The position numbers and the translations under genes are program-made. Shown one piece after another: positions 5,231 through 48,339 of a DNA stretch of 64,000 nucleotides. The stretch's first letter is position 1. Each line of letters begins with the position of its first letter. The notes below the pieces were generated by a model. That model was not told the origin of the DNA, did not search any database, and was given only the letters and a program-made list of their open reading frames with translations. The stretch lies in the sequence record NC_022096.1; one strand, given 5' to 3'.

Positions 5231-5737
5231 TTAGTTGCTGACCCGATTGATCAGCCGATTGAAAAGCTGCGCCTCACGTTCGTGAGCCAGGTGCAGCCTC
5301 TCCATGGTAGCCTGCACGTCTGCAAAAGAGACGTTGCCGAGAATGACACGCGCCTCTTGGCAGTGAGTCTCGATGAACCGCAGTTTGTTTTGCACCACGT
5401 TGTGCCTGCCGCCGAGTTCTTGGTTCTCCAGCTCCTTCGCAACCATACTACGGGCGGCATCGATTTCGTTCAATAGCTGCATGGTCGCGGCAAGCGCCTT
5501 GGTGTACTGCTTGATGTCTTCCTGTCGGTACGCATAGAGCTCCGACGTGAAGGTCTGTGCCGTGGTGAGGGTGTCGTGGCACATGCTCTTTGTTTGATCA
5601 AACAGCGCCAGAGATTCGTTGCGTGCCGCGCGCAATGCGTTCTTGGCAATGCGCAGCTTGTTGTGCAGCACGGTCAGGTAGATCGCACCGCCAACAGCCA
5701 GGATGAGTGTGATGAAGTTGGCCCAGGAGAAGCTCAT
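5231..5737 (-). CDS. N-terminally membrane-anchored coiled-coil protein
   Basis: hydrophobic ANFITLILAVGGAIYLTVL then helical heptad-like region. Confidence 0.7.
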   Translation of the reverse strand: MSFSWANFITLILAVGGAIYLTVLHNKLRIAKNALRAARNESLALFDQTKSMCHDTLTTAQTFTSELYAYRQEDIKQYTKALAATMQLLNEIDAARSMVAKELENQELGGRHNVVQNKLRFIETHCQEARVILGNVSFADVQATMERLHLAHEREAQLFNRLINRVSN

Positions 5738-5765
5738 AGATAGTCACCGTACTGTTTTCAGTAGT

Positions 5766-6131
5766 TCACAGTTTCTTGTACGCCTGCGGGTCTTCGCGTG
5801 TTGGGTCGATCACGTACCCGTGCTTGATGCACCACTGCTGCAACGGAGGGTACCGCACCTCTTCGATGCGCACACCGTCGTAGCCGTGTTCTTTAGCCAA
5901 GCGCTCGATTGCTATGACCAGTTCTTTGAAATAGCCCTTGCCCTTGTCGGCTTCGCGGGTCAGGTAAACATGGCTGATGCCGACAGCCCACTTCCACTGT
6001 CGCGTTTCAACATCCAGATGGTACTCGCCAGCACGAAGGTAAATGTGGATGTTGTGATCTTCAAACCAAAGGGACCGCGTGTGGCTTGCGGTCCTTTGAG
6101 TTTCGATGAATTGGCGAATTGCCTCCATCAT
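5766..6131 (-). CDS. GNAT-like N-acetyltransferase
   Basis: HVYLTREADKGKGYFKELV (acetyl-CoA loop R/KxxGxG/Y-like) and terminal WCIKHGY. Confidence 0.6.
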   Translation of the reverse strand: MMEAIRQFIETQRTASHTRSLWFEDHNIHIYLRAGEYHLDVETRQWKWAVGISHVYLTREADKGKGYFKELVIAIERLAKEHGYDGVRIEEVRYPPLQQWCIKHGYVIDPTREDPQAYKKL

Positions 6132-21100: not shown

Positions 21101-21641
21101 AGTCGAGTGCCTCGTAACGGTGCGTTGTGAACAGCTTGTGCTCTGCTATCTGCTCCACTTGGTGGAACTTCGGAGGCAGCGGCGGCATGAAGGTATCGCC
21201 GACGTAGCTGTACGTCAGGTGCGTGATGATCGCCTCATCGACGTGCACCTTACCTTCGAAGGCCGCTTCGTACAGGCTCTTACCGCCGATGATAAACACT
21301 CGGCCGTCTTCGCTCAACTGCACGGCTTGTTCGACCAGGCGATTCAGGTCGTCGCTGACGGTGAACAGCTTGATGTGGTCGAAGTTGACAGAGGTGACGT
21401 CCTGCGTGAGCACGCACGGGGCTCGCGTCTGCCAGACCGAACGCGGCATGGACTCGAACGTGCGGCGACCACAGATCAGTGGACTGGTGCCAGTGATCTT
21501 CTTGAACAGCGCCAGTTCTTCTGGGATGTGCCACGGCAGTTTGCCCTTGTCGCCGATGCAGTCGTTTGCAGCCACTGCGGCGATGAGGATAACCTTCGGA
21601 GTCTTCTCAGCTTCCACTGGTTGTTTCTTCTTAGTAGGCAT
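21093..21641 (-). CDS. folA: dihydrofolate reductase
   Basis: LIAAVAANDCIGDKGKLPWHIPEELALFKKIT, ICGRRTFES, FIIGGKSLY, GDTFMP. Confidence 0.95.
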   Translation of the reverse strand: MPTKKKQPVEAEKTPKVILIAAVAANDCIGDKGKLPWHIPEELALFKKITGTSPLICGRRTFESMPRSVWQTRAPCVLTQDVTSVNFDHIKLFTVSDDLNRLVEQAVQLSEDGRVFIIGGKSLYEAAFEGKVHVDEAIITHLTYSYVGDTFMPPLPPKFHQVEQIAEHKLFTTHRYEALDYE

Positions 21642-22086
21642 CCGGGTCTTCCTCGCTGTGTGCGCGACGCAAAGCCGAGAAGCCTTGCTGCAGGTGAGTG
21701 TTGGCAATGTTCAGCCAGCGGCCGTGTCCGCCCTGAACCAAATTGCGCGACATATCGACAGCATCTTTCGACAGTTGCGCGGCTGCATCAATCAGCAGCT
21801 CGATTTCCGCACGTACGGCTTCTTCGCGCTCGCGGATTTCGTTACCATCGATGGCGACTGTCATGCGGTTACCGCCAGTGAAGAACTCGACGTTCACACC
21901 GCCAGATCGAGGATTCCCAGCGACGGAGAAGCCCTGCCCGATCATCGGATGCACGTTGGCATTCAAGTGCGCACTCATTTCACGGTACAGCACTTCGTCC
22001 ATTTGCTGACCCTGGAAGACAGCCAGACGATCAGCCAGAATCAACTTCGCTACGTCGGCAGAGACGTTCAGATTGAGATGGGTCAT
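21631..22086 (-). CDS. Acb2/T4 Vs.4-like sponge domain with N-terminal extension
   Basis: C-terminal GRWLNIANTHLQQGFSALRRA matches the recalled Acb2 C-terminal helix; start MTHLN (TAATG overlap). Confidence 0.6.
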   Translation of the reverse strand: MTHLNLNVSADVAKLILADRLAVFQGQQMDEVLYREMSAHLNANVHPMIGQGFSVAGNPRSGGVNVEFFTGGNRMTVAIDGNEIREREEAVRAEIELLIDAAAQLSKDAVDMSRNLVQGGHGRWLNIANTHLQQGFSALRRAHSEEDPDAY

Positions 22087-22523
22087 TATACCTCCTGAAG
22101 GGTGTTGACGCGCCACGGGGCGGAAACAGATGAGGGCGACAGATCGGGCGAACCTGGCAAGCACATATCGCCACGTTGCAGCGACTTGTTCATGGACTCT
22201 GCGAAAGCCATGCCTGTTGCTTCGAGTTTACCCACAGGCATGGCACATGCGTAGATCGCAATGCCAATTCGCGGATCACTGTGGTAGGCATTCTTGGGCG
22301 CTACGATATTGCTGGGTAGCACATGGCGACCTCGCTTATCGATGCCAAGCTGCGAACTCACTGCGACCAGTTTGAGCTGGGCGTCTTCATCGATGTGTAG
22401 CACGACGAAAACATCCACAAGCGTCTGGCCATTCGCTTGGTGCAAACCCTTGGGATGGTACCAGGTGATTCTGCGACTAGCCCGACGACCGCACAGAGTG
22501 GTGCGATAGCGTTCCTGTTTCAT
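22086..22523 (-). CDS. hypothetical protein
   Basis: 145 aa, AAGGAG upstream, ATGA coupling. Confidence 0.55.
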   Translation of the reverse strand: MKQERYRTTLCGRRASRRITWYHPKGLHQANGQTLVDVFVVLHIDEDAQLKLVAVSSQLGIDKRGRHVLPSNIVAPKNAYHSDPRIGIAIYACAMPVGKLEATGMAFAESMNKSLQRGDMCLPGSPDLSPSSVSAPWRVNTLQEV

Positions 22524-22654
22524 TTGGTTCTTCGCTCCTTTCGCATACGAGCCTTCTCGCCCTTACTTCTTTTCCTGGGCTGGTGCGGATCGTCGGCGAC
22601 GTGCTGTGGGTTGGCAATGGCTTGAGCTAACGCCAAAGCGCTGAGCTTCATCAT
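22520..22654 (-). CDS. small basic protein (44 aa, absent from ORF track)
   Basis: MMKLSALALAQAIANPQHVADDPHQPRKRSKGEKARMRKERRTK*; GAGG RBS; stop overlaps next start. Confidence 0.55.
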   Translation of the reverse strand: MMKLSALALAQAIANPQHVADDPHQPRKRSKGEKARMRKERRTK

Positions 22655-22659
22655 GAGCC

Positions 22660-24198
22660 TCATCCCATGAGAATCCAGTCGAGCGAGACCACCTCGTCGA
22701 TGGCTTCGGCTATCGCTTCGTCCACGTCAATCCGCAGATCGCCGCGCTCCATGAAAACCCCAACGTCGAACGAACGATCCTGAGCTCCGTTGATTGCGGA
22801 CATCGGGAACTTCAGGTGCAGCACGCAGTTCTGCGCATCCGCCTGGAAGAACCGCTCGACGGGTGGTGTGACCATTCGATGGGTCACGAAGTGGTGCATT
22901 ACTTCCGACGCACGCTGCTGCAGGCTGAACCAGAAGCTGAGGTCGAACGGGCTGCCTTTGTCGCTATAGTCGCGGACATACTTGCTGACTTCGCGCAGCA
23001 CCGACACAACAACGATCAAGTCTGGAAGGACACCGCCGCGAACTGTTCGATTGCCCCAGACAACAGGGCCGCACATAGGCACCTGCCCGACGTAGTTCAT
23101 GCCATTCAGCGCGACGGTGTCACGCCAAGCTGCCGAACGCGGTTGCTTCCAGTCGAATTTGAATCGATCCAGGGCTTTGTCCGTCTTAGCTCCTGCAAGA
23201 GTACCGCCGACCTCCATCAGAATTGAGCGGATGGCCTCACTCGCCTGATCGATGAATATGTCGTTCGCGTTGATGCAGTACCACAGACCGACCTTGGGTT
23301 TGAGAGTTGCGTCGGTCGTGACATTGATCTTGAGAGGCGGGAACTCGATCTGCGAACTGGATGCGCTTTGGACTTCAACGATCTTCTGAATAGGATGCGT
23401 ATCCAGAGTCGCCACGTGCTTGGTGCAGCCGCGCAAGTTGTCGCGCCGAGTCTCCCACGGTCCTTTGGATTTCAGAGTGCGCTCTTGCACAGTGATCGAC
23501 TTCATGAGGACCATAGCCTCGTCGTAAGTCAACACGTCCTCACTCGCAGAACCCCAGCAATGCCTCCAGAGGTTCCACACCTCTTGGTACCCTGCAGGAT
23601 TCCAGCGACCAATCGCGTAATGTCCAGCCACACCATCCGCACGATCTACCAGATACGGCACCCAAGGCGTTTTGGTTTTCGCAGGCTTATCGGCATTGAT
23701 GCACGCAGGACACGTCGGACGAGAACCGCCCCAGAGTTCTTCTGGAGTGTACTCGCCGGAGTTGAGCAGCTCCAGATCACGCGCGGTTGGAACGCAGCAA
23801 AGAACGGCACTACTGTTCGTATGCGTGAACAGCAAGGCACGGAAGTCTTCGTGTTCAACGATCTGTGCAGCTACCCGTTCGTGCATGTTGCCGGCATCTT
23901 CACCTTGAGCGAAAGCGCGCTTCCACGCTTCTGCGGACAGCGCACTCGGGACCTGCAATATCGGCACGAAGCCCCACGCATCTGGACTGGGCTCCATGCG
24001 GTCCAAGAAATTGGCAAGCGACTTGCTCCACTTCTTGCCATTCATGCCGATATAGCTCACCGTGATCGGGTATTCCTCGTTACGGCCCGGATCAGCTTCC
24101 GCGTTCGTGATGTCATACACGGTGTAGCTGATCTTGTTCTTTTTGTGCACCCACGGACTACCGATTCGTGGAATGCCATTCTCGTCGCAGTTCATCAT
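22660..24198 (-). CDS. mosaic protein: N-terminal DUF1653-like domain, C-terminal tail-sheath-like domain
   Basis: GSPWVHKKNKISYTV...VSY...KWSKSLANF; RDTVALNGMNYVGQVPMCGPVVWGNRTV aligns with the sheath at 46753..48339. Confidence 0.7.
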   Translation of the reverse strand: MMNCDENGIPRIGSPWVHKKNKISYTVYDITNAEADPGRNEEYPITVSYIGMNGKKWSKSLANFLDRMEPSPDAWGFVPILQVPSALSAEAWKRAFAQGEDAGNMHERVAAQIVEHEDFRALLFTHTNSSAVLCCVPTARDLELLNSGEYTPEELWGGSRPTCPACINADKPAKTKTPWVPYLVDRADGVAGHYAIGRWNPAGYQEVWNLWRHCWGSASEDVLTYDEAMVLMKSITVQERTLKSKGPWETRRDNLRGCTKHVATLDTHPIQKIVEVQSASSSQIEFPPLKINVTTDATLKPKVGLWYCINANDIFIDQASEAIRSILMEVGGTLAGAKTDKALDRFKFDWKQPRSAAWRDTVALNGMNYVGQVPMCGPVVWGNRTVRGGVLPDLIVVVSVLREVSKYVRDYSDKGSPFDLSFWFSLQQRASEVMHHFVTHRMVTPPVERFFQADAQNCVLHLKFPMSAINGAQDRSFDVGVFMERGDLRIDVDEAIAEAIDEVVSLDWILMG

Positions 24199-24818
24199 GG
24201 CTTCAACCCCAAAATGTTGGCGTAGATACCGACATCGCGGCTTACACGGCCGCTCCAGCCGTAGTAAAATTCCTCGTCCTTCTGGCGCTTCTGGACGAGC
24301 TGCAGGTAGTGATGGCCTTGCTCAGCAAGTAGCGCGATGAGCATTCGGTTGACACCTTCAGCACCGCGCTTGGCGATGTAAGCATCGAGCGCTTTGAGGG
24401 TCTTGTCTCCGATCCAGCCATCGACTTTCAGGTCGGCGTACAGCGTACCCTGATTGTTGTTGGCGTTGAGCACCTGCTGGAAATACGACCCGGCGGTGGT
24501 CACGCCCATGTTGATCGCCATGTCGAACAACTTGTCGGCAAACAGCGCGTGACGCTTCATCAGATCGTCAGCATACAGGCGCGACCAGAAGTGGGTCTCG
24601 TACAGCCAGTAGGCCATATCGATGCTCAGGTTGCGCATCGTGCCGTCCCAGCCGAACTGCACAACTAGCTGGTCACGGTAGTCGTTGGCGAGAGCAGCAG
24701 TAATGCCATGGTTGGTCTCACCGCCGCTGTCCTTCTTGTTGTTGACGTAGCCGCCTTCGACCGCAGTCTTGTCTGCGATGATGGCACGCGGAGTGAAGTC
24801 TGCGTACTTGGAGAGCAT
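24195..24818 (-). CDS. endolysin, glycoside hydrolase family 108 with PG-binding C-terminal domain
   Basis: EGGYVNNKKDSGGETNHGIT; DLKVDGWIGDKTL; EEFYYGW. Confidence 0.92.
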   Translation of the reverse strand: MLSKYADFTPRAIIADKTAVEGGYVNNKKDSGGETNHGITAALANDYRDQLVVQFGWDGTMRNLSIDMAYWLYETHFWSRLYADDLMKRHALFADKLFDMAINMGVTTAGSYFQQVLNANNNQGTLYADLKVDGWIGDKTLKALDAYIAKRGAEGVNRMLIALLAEQGHHYLQLVQKRQKDEEFYYGWSGRVSRDVGIYANILGLKP

Positions 24819-25387
24819 CAGTACAAGCCTCCGTCTACGCCAGTCTCGAACGTGGTCTTCACGCTCTCGGACATGATGACAGGATAATCGTCCGGACCGC
24901 CGGCACAGCCGATGTTCAGCGTGGGCATACCCATGAGGCCGAGAATCCACTTGTCCGGTACTTGGCGAGCGCGCACGCAGGCGATCTGCTTGCGGTCAAT
25001 CAGCATCTTCTCGGCGTTCTCGAAGCCGCTGCGGCCCACGTCGATGATGTTGATGATCTTCTGGTAGATGGCAGGATCGGGCGCGACGTTGTGCTCTTTC
25101 AACATCAGGACGTAAGCCTTGTAGCCGCCATCGCCGGAACGCGCCTTGATCTGCTCGGTAACGGTCTGCTTGATGTCATCCACGCTGAGCTGGCGAATGC
25201 CGATCACCTCTTTCACCTTCTGGCTGAGGTTGTTCAGCACGGTTTGGCGCGAACGGTCGGAAGCAATGATGCCTTCCTCGATGTTCACGTAACCGTTGTA
25301 CTTGGAGACGAAGACGATCAGCAACAGTGCGGTCAGCGCACCGAGGACCATAGACACGACGAGGCCGGAGCCTTTTTGATTGTTCAT
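24818..25387 (-). CDS. LemA-like membrane-anchored protein
   Basis: N-terminal TM followed by KYNGYVNIEEGI helical region. Confidence 0.55.
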   Translation of the reverse strand: MNNQKGSGLVVSMVLGALTALLLIVFVSKYNGYVNIEEGIIASDRSRQTVLNNLSQKVKEVIGIRQLSVDDIKQTVTEQIKARSGDGGYKAYVLMLKEHNVAPDPAIYQKIINIIDVGRSGFENAEKMLIDRKQIACVRARQVPDKWILGLMGMPTLNIGCAGGPDDYPVIMSESVKTTFETGVDGGLY

Positions 25388-25404: not shown

Positions 25405-26433
25405 TCAGTAACGGTAACGGCGAAGGCCGTAATTGCGACGGCGGTATTCACGGACCGCGACAAACATCGCCAGTCCGATGATGAGTATGTGCAACGCAAC
25501 GGTCCACAGTGGAGGACGATAGGCGTCTGCCATGAAGTTGTATTTCGACAGGTCTTCACGCTCGAAGAACGGCAGCGCCGAATCCAACGCAGCGACTATG
25601 TGCTCCTCATTGAACACACCGATGCGAGAAGCCTGCTCACGCAAAATCAGGTTGAAGTCTGCGTACTCTGCGTTGCGCTTGTTGGACGTGCTTCTGCCGA
25701 AGACATCGGCGCGCTTAACCGTAAGGTCTTTGTCCACATACAGCACCAGCACCGTGTCGTTCTTCTTACCTCCAGTCCACTCGTTGCGCAGAGCATCTGC
25801 GAAGCCTGCTGCCTTCTCATGGACAATGGCGACCATGGCATTCACTTGATACTTAGGTCCCCATTTCTGGTGTGCGACTCGCAACTGCCTGCCGAGTTCT
25901 TCGCAGTCTACGACGTTGCTCATGCAGCGATTGATGTGGTAGCCGTAGTAGATCGACGGGTACTGCGGCAACCAGCCGGCGTAACGAGCGTCCTTGTCGA
26001 ACAGCACGCTCTGGTCGTGGACATACTGGAAGTTAAAGAACAGCTTGTTACGAGCGAACGGTTGGCCTTTTTGGGCGGCATCCCAGATGTCAGGCGAGGT
26101 CTTGACGTAGGTGTACTCAGTGTAAGGGGCGCCAGTGTCAGAGTGGACGTCCCAGCGCCAGCGTGGTATCTCGCGGTAGCAAGTGTCTTTGCCGTCAGTG
26201 CCGCAACTGTACGACTCTTCCTCTGGGTCATAGGCCCAGGACTTCCCAGTAACACTACCGGACAACACCTCGAACGAAGACGCCTGTAGCATCAGCGAGC
26301 CGAAGTAAACCACGAATGCGGTGAGGATACCAACGCCGATGCCCAGAGCAAACTCCGTCTTGTCCTTGTATCGTTGGTAGACGAGGCACATGACGATAAT
26401 AGACAACAGGCTGTAGAAGAAAATTTCAATCAT
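25405..26433 (-). CDS. membrane protein with large extracytoplasmic (TPM-like) domain
   Basis: two N-terminal TMs and one C-terminal TM; WTGGKKNDTVLVL. Confidence 0.7.
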   Translation of the reverse strand: MIEIFFYSLLSIIVMCLVYQRYKDKTEFALGIGVGILTAFVVYFGSLMLQASSFEVLSGSVTGKSWAYDPEEESYSCGTDGKDTCYREIPRWRWDVHSDTGAPYTEYTYVKTSPDIWDAAQKGQPFARNKLFFNFQYVHDQSVLFDKDARYAGWLPQYPSIYYGYHINRCMSNVVDCEELGRQLRVAHQKWGPKYQVNAMVAIVHEKAAGFADALRNEWTGGKKNDTVLVLYVDKDLTVKRADVFGRSTSNKRNAEYADFNLILREQASRIGVFNEEHIVAALDSALPFFEREDLSKYNFMADAYRPPLWTVALHILIIGLAMFVAVREYRRRNYGLRRYRY

Positions 26434-46752: not shown

Positions 46753-48339
46753 TTACTGCGTACGGTCGTTGACGCTGATGGCGTACTGAATCTGACCGGT
46801 GCGCGGCACGATTGCGTTCAGGTGGATACGCTTGGCAATCATCATCGGATCGACGTAAACGTCGAGGACACAATCACCGGACGCTTCCAGCTCGGGCGGG
46901 TTGTTGCTGGAGTCGCAGATGATCTCGTAGCCATACAGACCACGGCCACGCTTGACTGGACCCAGAATGTCTTCGGCGATACCAGAGAGCTGCAGGCGCA
47001 GCGTGGCATCGTTTTGCTCGAACACACCCGCGAGGGCAGCGATCTTCAACTGGGCCATCAGGCTGTTCATCAGGCGGCGAACGTGAATGTTCGATAGCGC
47101 AGACGCGAAGCCTTGCAGGGTCTCTTGCGACCACAGTACCAAACCGTAGTTCGGCATCTTGTGGATGAAGTTGACCTGGTTCTGATCCAGCGTGTCACGG
47201 TCGCCTTGCTTGTACACTTGGCGAACGCCGTTTGCCAGAATCTTACCGCGGGTCACACCCGCAGGTGCGAACCACTCGGCAGCGACGCGATCGGTCCGAG
47301 CGTAGCACGCGGCGACATAGCCCGAGGGCGGGCAGAAGATCGTCACGTTGTCTTCGTTGGTGATCGACAAATCCGGCGTGTAGATGCCGGCGAAGGAGCT
47401 GCTCAGGTTCAGCGTGTTGCGGCGGTAAGCCACAGCTTGCTGGGTGCTCTGGAAGTCTGAAGGCATATCGAGAATGGCGAACGCATCGCCACGCTGTTCT
47501 GCCACTTCCGCCATCTTCAGGTGCACTGCCGGAGAGGCATAGCCGCCGTTGATCAGCAGGGTGACAGTGATTTCCTCGGTGTCCGCGTAGGCGTCCCAGC
47601 CATCGATGATGTCGTCCATCGTGATGGCGTCACCGTCATTGCCGTGAGTCAGATCACCAGCGATAACCGAGTTCACCAAGCGCACGCGCTCGTTGTCACG
47701 GTACTTCGGATGGTCACGATTCACGCGGGCGCGCAGGCGGGAGCTTTTCTGCTCCAGTTGATCTTCGATGCTCAGTTGGCGGCCGTAACCATCGACAGTC
47801 TCGCGCAGGGTAGCGCGGTAACTTTCGACGGCGATAGTGGCGCTGCCTTCGTAGACATCGAGGACGAACAGTTCGTTGGCGATATCGGAAGTGTCCGGGT
47901 ACGCCACGATGCGCAGGTCGTTGTTCCAGTTGCCAGGGTCAGCAGCGTACAGGAACAGGACATCGTTCTCGTTGAAGGAGTAGTCGTCGGGAGTATCGAA
48001 ACCCTCGACGCTGTTCTGGATGGTTGCGAACTCGTTGACAGTGGCGATCCGTACAGAACCGAACTTGGCGTTGCGGGCCACGCGCAGGTAGTACAGTTGG
48101 CTGGCTTCCGACAAGAACTGCTCCGCACAGAAGTGTGCGAAGGTCAGCTTAGCGTCAGGCGCGCCGAACTTGGATCGGAAGTTTTTCTTGTCAACCGTGA
48201 GTGTCGGTACACCGACAGGGCCGCGCTTCGACGGGCCCACCATGGCACCAATCGACGACGAAACGGCGACACCGCGGACCGACTGGTCATCGATGGCACC
48301 GTAAACGCCGGCGCTGGAGCTGCTGCCGTTGTTCAACAT
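46753..48339 (-). CDS. contractile tail sheath protein
   Basis: 528 aa; GPSKRGPVGVPT, PPSGYVAA, WFAPAG, IHVRRL. Confidence 0.93.
   Translation of the reverse strand: MLNNGSSSSAGVYGAIDDQSVRGVAVSSSIGAMVGPSKRGPVGVPTLTVDKKNFRSKFGAPDAKLTFAHFCAEQFLSEASQLYYLRVARNAKFGSVRIATVNEFATIQNSVEGFDTPDDYSFNENDVLFLYAADPGNWNNDLRIVAYPDTSDIANELFVLDVYEGSATIAVESYRATLRETVDGYGRQLSIEDQLEQKSSRLRARVNRDHPKYRDNERVRLVNSVIAGDLTHGNDGDAITMDDIIDGWDAYADTEEITVTLLINGGYASPAVHLKMAEVAEQRGDAFAILDMPSDFQSTQQAVAYRRNTLNLSSSFAGIYTPDLSITNEDNVTIFCPPSGYVAACYARTDRVAAEWFAPAGVTRGKILANGVRQVYKQGDRDTLDQNQVNFIHKMPNYGLVLWSQETLQGFASALSNIHVRRLMNSLMAQLKIAALAGVFEQNDATLRLQLSGIAEDILGPVKRGRGLYGYEIICDSSNNPPELEASGDCVLDVYVDPMMIAKRIHLNAIVPRTGQIQYAISVNDRTQ

Follow-up and report, generated by a model that had tools for sequence, protein, structure and literature searches.

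The window analysed here, a stretch of 64,000 nucleotides, is the first 64 kb of the genome of the jumbo Pseudomonas phage PaBG (genus Baikalvirus; NC_022096.1, 258,139 bp), with the same sequence and numbering. Within it we examined gp43 (O152_gp043), a protein whose C-terminal third had been linked to the phage's own tail sheath in a sequence-only reading. The open reading frame (ORF) described in that reading was found as given and equals O152_gp043. The protein was still hypothetical in the 2020 re-annotation of the phage (PMC7412058 supplement), and it matches PHROG 4767 ('unknown function') with 1143 bits, residues 2-512 falling on profile positions 1-505; each of its modules also matches this profile on its own. 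The gene lies downstream of the endolysin gene gp44 and is followed by gp42, gp41 and a dihydrofolate reductase (DHFR) gene. It lies 22.5 kb from the sheath gene gp76; the reading had put it about 22 kb from the tail operon. The features of the locus and of the sheath gene are as follows; models are from AlphaFold2 (AF2), with the predicted local distance difference test (pLDDT) and the predicted template modelling score (pTM) as measures of confidence.

22660-24198 (-): gp43 (O152_gp043), mosaic protein, 512 aa, 57.4 kDa; 'hypothetical protein' in RefSeq
23974-24198 (-): N-terminal domain, residues 1-75, small SH3-like beta barrel; 25 invariant alignment columns
23674-23973 (-): insert, residues 76-175, present among family members only in PaBG, P0002 and P0003 (alignment)
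23488-23673 (-): Trp-rich mobile module, residues 176-237, with five Trp; BLASTP matches to proteins P0010-P0020
23353-23487 (-): variable linker, residues 238-282, predicted disordered (pLDDT 24-38); its length varies in the alignment
22663-23352 (-): C-terminal domain, residues 283-512, sheath-related fold; modelled alone by AF2 at pLDDT 79.3 and pTM 0.79
22870-23244 (-): core alignable to sheaths, residues 319-443, comprising a helix, an 'AG' loop, the motif hairpin (23041-23124) and two long helices
22701-23457 (-): cassette, residues 248-500, without blastn similarity to metagenomic contig L005 (counterpart L005:6742-7432)
24195-24818 (-): gp44, endolysin with GH108 and PG_binding_3 domains (Pfam and annotation); its stop overlaps the gp43 start (ATGA)
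22520-22663 (-): unannotated conserved 47-aa ORF between gp43 and gp42, with an ATGA overlap at each end
46753-48339 (-): gp76, tail sheath protein, 528 aa; PF04984 at residues 238-405, PF17482 at 414-507, phrog_23
46933-47310 (-): gp76 segment aligned to gp43 by hhalign, residues 344-469

Relationship of the C-terminal domain to contractile sheaths

The suggested link to the sheath had come from a short ungapped peptide match. Both peptides were located and the alignment was reproduced: residues 359-386 of gp43 (window 23041-23124) align without gaps to residues 381-408 of gp76 (window 47116-47199), with 10 of 28 positions identical. The Smith-Waterman score of the two proteins was 65, a value reached by one of 2000 shuffles in each direction (Gumbel p ~3e-4 for this single pair), and pairwise BLASTP returned 11/30 identities at E 3e-4. 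When gp43 was compared with all 344 ORFs of the window (stop-to-stop, at least 80 aa), the sheath was the top non-self match at E 0.027, followed by the next at E 1.1. Since E is 0.027 once all window ORFs count as comparisons, the peptide signal taken alone is real but marginal. The motif had been assigned to PF17482; it in fact lies at the end of PF04984, which covers gp76 residues 238-405, with PF17482 beginning at residue 414.

Profile-profile comparison provided the main evidence for a relationship. With a 43-sequence alignment of the gp76 family, including both types of sheath paralog, on the sheath side, hhalign aligned the nine-member C-terminal family of gp43 over 108 columns (gp43 333-443 against sheath 358-469) at a probability of 86.5 and E 4.5e-6. 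When distant relatives were added to give a 32-sequence family, the alignment extended over 103 columns (gp43 319-426, sheath 344-450) at a probability of 92.8 and E 4e-7. The score of this alignment was 58.1, whereas three reversed alignments scored 14-18 and 40 column-shuffled sheath alignments reached at most 24.6; thus the match was better than shuffled controls at the level of the profiles as well as that of the pair. Identity over the aligned core was ~20%. Of the aligned family columns, 13 show at least 70% conservation; eight of these face sheath columns conserved to the same degree, seven with the identical residue. The residues conserved in both the family and the sheath are A335, G336, R359, D360, N368, W381 and L391. 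The helix-helix pattern that the sequence-only reading had seen beyond the peptide was borne out by AF2 helices at residues 391-413 and 420-439, which hhalign aligned to sheath residues 414-469. Furthermore, the sole non-self PHROG match of the C-terminal domain was a tail-sheath family, at E 0.3.

Structure comparison by Foldseek pointed in the same direction. Sheaths were the best matches outside the family, at weak scores (E 0.03-2); an absence of sheath topology, which would have refuted the sequence-only reading, was not the outcome. The best local fit, to PaBG gp76, had a root-mean-square deviation of 3.5 A over 111 columns, with a probability of 0.94. Among the top 50 matches, at least 12 were named tail sheaths in the BFVD library, and eight were sheath chains of phages or contractile injection systems in the PDB library.

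Single-sequence and family-level searches did not reach the sheaths. For gp43 Pfam gave no match of any kind at E <= 1, and the sheath models matched none of the nine family members at E <= 10 and none of ten stand-alone relatives. Searches of Pfam, NCBIfam and PDB sequences, with single sequences and with the family profile, returned no sheath and no named family; the top PDB-sequence matches were antibody chains, by chance. An exhaustive hidden Markov model (HMM) search of 1.84 billion representative proteins gave 27 hits, none of them a true sheath. The likeness also stops short of the full sheath architecture. The counterpart in gp43 is limited to sheath residues 344-469; N-terminal of gp43 residue 283 there are only unrelated modules, and the C-terminal end is a conserved tail specific to the family, predicted to be helical and not aligned to the sheath end. 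Because the N-terminal two thirds of the subunit are missing, gp43 is not itself a sheath subunit. On the profile alignments, their controls and the shared conserved residues, the C-terminal domain is truly, if very distantly, related to the inner core of contractile sheaths, as had been proposed for the C-terminal third.

This domain is not, however, a copy of the phage's own sheath, as the sequence-only reading had it. PaBG has two sheath paralogs, both detected in virions (PMC7412058); the second is O152_gp273 (gp213 in PMC7412058), at 165256-166899 of the genome. The sheath initiator is annotated separately, as O152_gp247 in the baseplate module. In hhalign the family profile scored the two paralogs equally (32.6 and 32.3), and the family HMM did not detect gp76 at E <= 10; neither the Pfam models nor the exhaustive search had connected the family to a sheath. 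The exhaustive search did retrieve ~22 further proteins of 219-339 aa, which consist of the C-terminal domain alone or of the N-terminal and C-terminal domains. These stand-alone or differently fused relatives match no Pfam family, and PHROG 4767 is their only match. Like gp43, stand-alone members have the P-x-K/F-x-V strand, the G-L-x-Y-Y strand, the AG loop and the hairpin motif; unlike them, gp43 of PaBG carries the extra insert and the Trp-rich module.

A stand-alone and very diverged member is gp315 of the cultured Pseudomonas phage Lu11 (YP_006382845.1, 256 aa; L020:14524-15294 (-), Lu11 244524-245294), which hhalign placed in the family at a probability of 90.4. Its gene adjoins that of a nudix hydrolase, and its sheath-like hairpin motif is degenerate. 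BFVD entry I1TQW6, which matched the gp43 model at E 2.6e-8, is probably the same protein, as both have 256 aa. The tail module of Lu11 also holds a 108-aa ORF, gp054 (L019:25617-25943 (-)), that is annotated 'tail sheath'.

Because the two PaBG paralogs are equally distant and stand-alone relatives exist, the C-terminal domain represents an old, separate lineage. The small and unnamed C-terminal family, made up of the C-terminal half of PHROG 4767, Lu11 gp315 and ~20 metagenomic proteins, is well supported as a lineage that branched off the sheath inner core long ago and has since diverged strongly. We found no description of this family, or of a sheath-core domain outside the genes of tails and injection machines in RefSeq, the 2020 re-annotation, PHROG or the searched literature. 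The expectation that the fusion had gone undescribed therefore agrees with the 'hypothetical' and 'unknown function' labels of the protein and its PHROG family.

Mobile modules and exchange of the C-terminal cassette

The family alignment and BLASTP divide gp43 into five parts, so that the description of a sheath-related C-terminal third fused into a mosaic protein holds. The sequence contains no signal peptide and no membrane segment. A search of 5.8 billion proteins yielded eight close relatives at 43-71% identity, encoded on metagenomic contigs that reach 245 kb in length. In a tblastn search of 50,697 records of cultured phages, only PaBG encodes whole gp43, and other phages match just the N-terminal domain or 36 residues of the insert. 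IMG/VR, JGI metagenome contigs and GTDB genomes were also scanned, with matches only in PaBG, two close relatives and two loci with the N-terminal domain alone, and none in bacterial genomes. A second, word-indexed profile search gave no additional members.

All close relatives conserve the N-terminal domain, and tblastn located it in further proteins of Lu11 and of Vibrio, Acinetobacter and Xanthomonas phages. AF2 predicted four strands and a helix (pLDDT 63-87), and Foldseek matched them to the barrels of HspQ, Tudor, PWWP, CAP-Gly and eS4. This domain had been read as a DUF1653 SH3-type domain. The SH3-like barrel is supported by the fold matches, but the likeness to DUF1653 is weak: gp43 has no match to the model (PF07866), and one of nine family members has one at E 0.031, with a score far below threshold. 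The insert is predicted to be largely disordered or of low confidence (pLDDT 28-45, AF2). It holds Cys134/135 and, at residues 163-166 (window 23701-23712), the CPAC motif; this motif and the Trp-rich stretch are present as they had been noted. Residues 134-169 of the insert match proteins of phages Psp6 and pEp_SNUABM_08 (tblastn). The Trp-rich module is 43-69% identical over ~56-100 residues to the otherwise unrelated proteins P0010-P0020 (BLASTP), one of which has a Lar restriction-alleviation domain (PF14354) and another DUF551.

The C-terminal domain is replaced as a cassette between near-identical phages. The DNA of contig L005 (136 kb) has 93.7% identity to window 27000-23458 and 93.2% to window 22700-21000, and between these two segments, at window 22701-23457, blastn detected no similarity. 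The last 12 gp43 codons and both flanks are conserved in L005 at ~93.5% identity. At the protein level, L005 is 93-100% identical to PaBG in the neighbouring genes and 94-100% in gp43 residues 1-237, and 25-29% identical in the C-terminal domain. The L005 domain is only 21-27% identical to every other allele, which places it outside the clade of the other eight fused alleles. In contigs L002 and L006 the C-terminal domains are 91% identical to each other, with lysins that are 67% and 93% identical to that of PaBG. Moreover, no protein of the gene block has diverged more than gp43 in L005, L006, L003 and L007. Such a cassette pattern is typical of diversifying selection or frequent exchange. 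A swap between flanks of ~93.5% identity is hard to square with binding to an almost unchanged sheath of the phage itself. The proposal that gp43 caps or co-polymerises with its own sheath is accordingly made less likely by neighbours that are 93-100% identical around a domain that is 25-29% identical.

Gene neighbourhood of gp43

The order lysin, gp43 homolog and then, as far as the contigs reach, small genes and DHFR is found in six of the eight close relatives. In L002 a DUF1353 gene (5609-5998 (+)) lies between the lysin and the gp43 homolog. In L009 the homolog is abutted by a LemA-like gene (5429-6001 (+)), and no lysin is present there. The ATGA overlap of the gp43 start with the lysin stop, read directly at the junction in PaBG, had been correctly described; lysin stop and gp43 start also overlap in L003, L005, L006 and L008, and in L007 the genes are adjacent without overlap. 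The same ATGA overlap, however, joins gp43 to the 47-aa ORF and the 47-aa ORF to gp42, and genes of the operon commonly overlap by 1-4 nt. Because it recurs downstream of gp43, the overlap with the lysin reflects generic operon packing. The claim of a coupling to the endolysin did not withstand these comparisons, as identical overlaps lie elsewhere in the operon and the lysin is separated or missing in L002 and L009. The generic short overlaps likewise rule against a special translational coupling of gp43 to the lysin, which we had considered. Promoter and terminator scans gave counts not above those of shuffled sequences, and the only convincing terminator-like hairpin from the terminator scan lies downstream of gp39.

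The modules of gp43 also occur as separate genes in related neighbourhoods. In the distant contig L016 the order is a protein with the SH3 and C-terminal domains, a weak Acb2/Tad1-hairpin protein, the GH108 lysin, a 151-aa Trp-rich protein and DHFR. The Cys/Trp-rich middle module is thus a gene of its own there (L016:10080-10532 (+); PHROG 4767 positions 118-231, E 5e-22), and the gene for the SH3 and C-terminal domains lies two genes upstream of it. The difference between L016 and PaBG is module fission or fusion within a conserved neighbourhood. Other distant members are found after DHFR (L017/L018), near two Tad2-like genes (L011) and near the gene of an SNF2 giant protein (L010). DHFR recurs at the distant loci that are best resolved, one of which also has a GH108 lysin. 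Among the eight close and five distant relatives examined, none lies in a tail module; in PaBG, gp43 is placed between lysin and DHFR. Across the loci the neighbouring genes encode DHFR, GH108 lysin, weak Acb2/Tad1-hairpin-like proteins, Tad2-like proteins, a BrxR winged-helix protein, nudix hydrolase and SNF2.

Several further genes of the PaBG neighbourhood were characterised by sequence. The product of gp41 (21631-22086 (-)) has a weak match to the Acb2/Tad1 hairpin (E 3.7e-5, 24.3 bits against a Pfam cut-off of 27), and similar proteins are encoded beside the gp43 homolog in L016 (E 7e-4) and, faintly, in L004. On this match, gp41 may be a cyclic-nucleotide sponge of the anti-CBASS (cyclic-oligonucleotide-based anti-phage signalling system) or anti-Thoeris type. 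The 47-aa ORF is hydrophobic at its N-terminus and very basic in its C-terminal tail, and genes of 43-52 aa, conserved at the protein level, occupy the same place in L002, L004, L005 and L006. Located two genes after the lysin, it could encode a small lysis-related peptide. Directly upstream of the lysin, gp45 (24818-25387 (-)) encodes a LemA-like 'virion structural protein' (phrog_1383). Next to it, gp46 (25405-26433 (-)) encodes a 342-aa protein (phrog_2087, unknown function) whose ends are hydrophobic by eye. Both are possible membrane partners of the lysis genes. The endolysin frame is open upstream to a GTG at 24950 (24195-24950 (-), 251 aa), as compared with the annotated 207-aa start at 24818; this extension overlaps gp45 and is probably unused.

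Candidate roles of gp43 and comparison with known systems

With regard to what gp43 is, we regard it as very probably a soluble, non-core accessory protein built of mobile modules and carrying a diverged sheath-core domain. The C-terminal domain would most likely be a non-polymerising, sheath-derived binding module within this fast-evolving protein. How it works can be stated only tentatively: the domain may form a binding surface for a variable partner, with gp43 engaged in host interaction or counter-defence. The sheath-derived domain would present a protein-binding surface whose partner varies between hosts or competitors, the remaining modules would add further binding or tethering surfaces, and gp43 would act in host interaction or counter-defence and not as a tail part. 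A role of this kind is suggested by the swapping of the domain as a cassette between near-identical phages, by the rank of gp43 as the fastest-evolving protein of its gene block in the closer relatives, by the fusion and splitting of modules within the same neighbourhood, and by the accessory and counter-defence-like genes found there. Overall, a sheath-core-derived module in a mobile-module accessory protein that acts in host interaction or counter-defence is the best explanation, plausible though short of probable. It is more doubtful that the sheath-core descendant has been recruited as a swappable specificity cassette, a mimic engaging a host sensor or a rival contractile machine. In that case, near-identical jumbo phages would trade alleles with each change of target.

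A number of observations weigh against this explanation. On the side of function, gp43 matches no anti-defence family in Pfam, NCBIfam or PHROG; only its neighbours and module partners do (Acb2/Tad1 weakly, Tad2-like, Lar), and the counter-defence flavour of the neighbourhood consists of sub-threshold matches (24.3 bits against a cut-off of 27) and a few short contigs. The gene shares a dense, overlapped operon with the lysin; this suggests expression together with a late function, an arrangement atypical of counter-defence genes. The decoy and poison ideas of the sequence-only reading are speculative. No defence system is known to sense sheath proteins, and the decoy is without precedent so far: a 2026 preprint on bacterial sensors of the core phage proteome (10.64898/2026.01.04.697583) mentions the tail sheath only as a possible further target. 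The virion proteome in PMC7412058, the only gel study, identified 14 bands by matrix-assisted laser desorption/ionization (MALDI) and does not list gp43; at 57.4 kDa, however, the protein would co-migrate with the sheath and tail bands of 57.2-58.5 kDa, so the band list is compatible with a structural role as well as with its absence. On the side of structure, the Foldseek matches to sheaths have weak scores (query TM 0.24-0.35), no match outside the family reached E <= 1e-3, and the models were built from nine sequences only.

In the strongest rival, gp43 would serve as a minor component of the tail or as an assembly factor and act on the phage's own two-component sheath. It would cap, terminate or template this sheath by presenting its sheath-like hairpin and helices to the arms that true subunits exchange. 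The homology covers exactly the inner, polymerisation-related part of the sheath, and the conserved residues are kept. The PaBG sheath is unusual in having two paralogs (PMC7412058). Late expression is suggested by the operon shared with the lysin, as inferred from its layout, and the mass of gp43 would hide it under the sheath bands of the published gel. Stand-alone pieces of sheath-like fold are used in this way elsewhere: T4 gp25 and TssE of the type VI secretion system (T6SS) start sheath polymerisation. Against this stand the location of gp43 and of all relatives examined outside tail modules, and the lack of whole gp43 in Lu11, the one cultured relative examined that has sheath and tail genes. 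The 25-29% identical domain of a near-identical phage also fits poorly with binding to an almost unchanged sheath, and the sheath-like motif is degenerate in Lu11 gp315. We consider such a tail function unlikely.

Still less likely is an accessory role in the lysis cassette, in which gp43, as a soluble protein, would partner or regulate the GH108 endolysin or the disruption of the envelope. The position of the gene favours it: gp43 lies directly downstream of the lysin, overlapping it in PaBG and four relatives and adjoining it in L007, and the lysin is nearby again in the distant L016. Upstream are the membrane proteins gp45 (LemA-like) and gp46, and directly after gp43 comes the conserved small ORF with its hydrophobic N-terminus and very basic tail. 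In addition, SH3-like domains are frequent binders of cell-wall material. However, gp43 has neither signal peptide nor membrane segment, and in L009, L002, L017/L018, L010 and L011 and at Lu11 gp315 the lysin is either missing or set apart. DHFR is an equally constant neighbour, and the start/stop overlaps are generic in the operon. The domain is also unlike known lysis regulators: its fold matches to IseA are short and weak (E 0.35-1.3, 47-58 columns), and an IseA-like endopeptidase inhibitor was rejected on these grounds.

That the sheath likeness arose by chance or convergence, and that the C-terminal domain is an unrelated alpha/beta fold, is very improbable. In its favour are the window-wide E of 0.027 for the pairwise signal, the lack of any HMMER-level link to sheaths and the fact that every Foldseek sheath match has E > 0.01. 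These are outweighed by a profile score more than twice the best of the 40 column shuffles and the three reversed controls, which moreover rises with a deeper family alignment, by the coincidence of conserved residues between family and sheath, and by the strong enrichment of sheaths at the top of the fold searches of two independent libraries. Least credible is that a recent orphan duplicate of the PaBG sheath gene became fused to other modules. In its favour, the best pairwise match in the window is to the sheath of the phage itself, but a recent duplication of gp76 is contradicted by the ~20% identity over the core, the equal paralog scores (32.6 and 32.3), the occurrence of the same domain as a stand-alone protein in distant phages and the failure of the family HMM to find gp76 at E <= 10.

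Both the sheath homology and the exchange of the cassette rest on solid evidence and are somewhat unexpected. Sheath proteins count as dedicated parts of tails and injection machines, and a diverged, non-polymerising sheath-core domain outside tail modules, fused or stand-alone, would extend the uses of the fold. The relationship also provides a testable handle and a name for an uncharacterised family that comprises PHROG 4767, Lu11 gp315 and ~20 metagenomic proteins, and it brings to three the sheath-related genes of a phage known before for a sheath of two components. Should the partner of gp43 be a host or competitor protein, the family would represent a new class of structural-protein mimic, and on the mimic reading the first such mimic of a sheath in phage-host or phage-phage conflict. 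If gp43 is instead a tail part, it would bear on the start or end of the two-paralog sheath.

Among known systems, the DUF1653 and SH3-like small barrels resemble the N-terminal domain of gp43 in the predicted beta barrel and differ from it in that the Pfam score is sub-threshold and confined to one relative. With the Lar and DUF551 proteins gp43 has the Trp-rich module in common, a module without a family name; gp43 itself has neither Lar nor DUF551. T4 gp25 and TssE are alike to gp43 in concept only, as short reuses of the sheath core outside a full subunit; unlike them, gp43 lies outside the tail and baseplate module, and the initiator of PaBG is O152_gp247. A further comparison is with the contractile sheaths themselves (PF04984 and PF17482; gp76, O152_gp273 and the T4 gp18 type), of which ~105-125 inner-core residues align to gp43 at a probability of 87-93%. 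The C-terminal domain and the sheaths share the hairpin, the two long helices, a small sheet and seven conserved residues, whereas gp43 differs from them in failing both Pfam models, in its non-tail locus and unrelated fusions, and in its cassette exchange and sporadic distribution.

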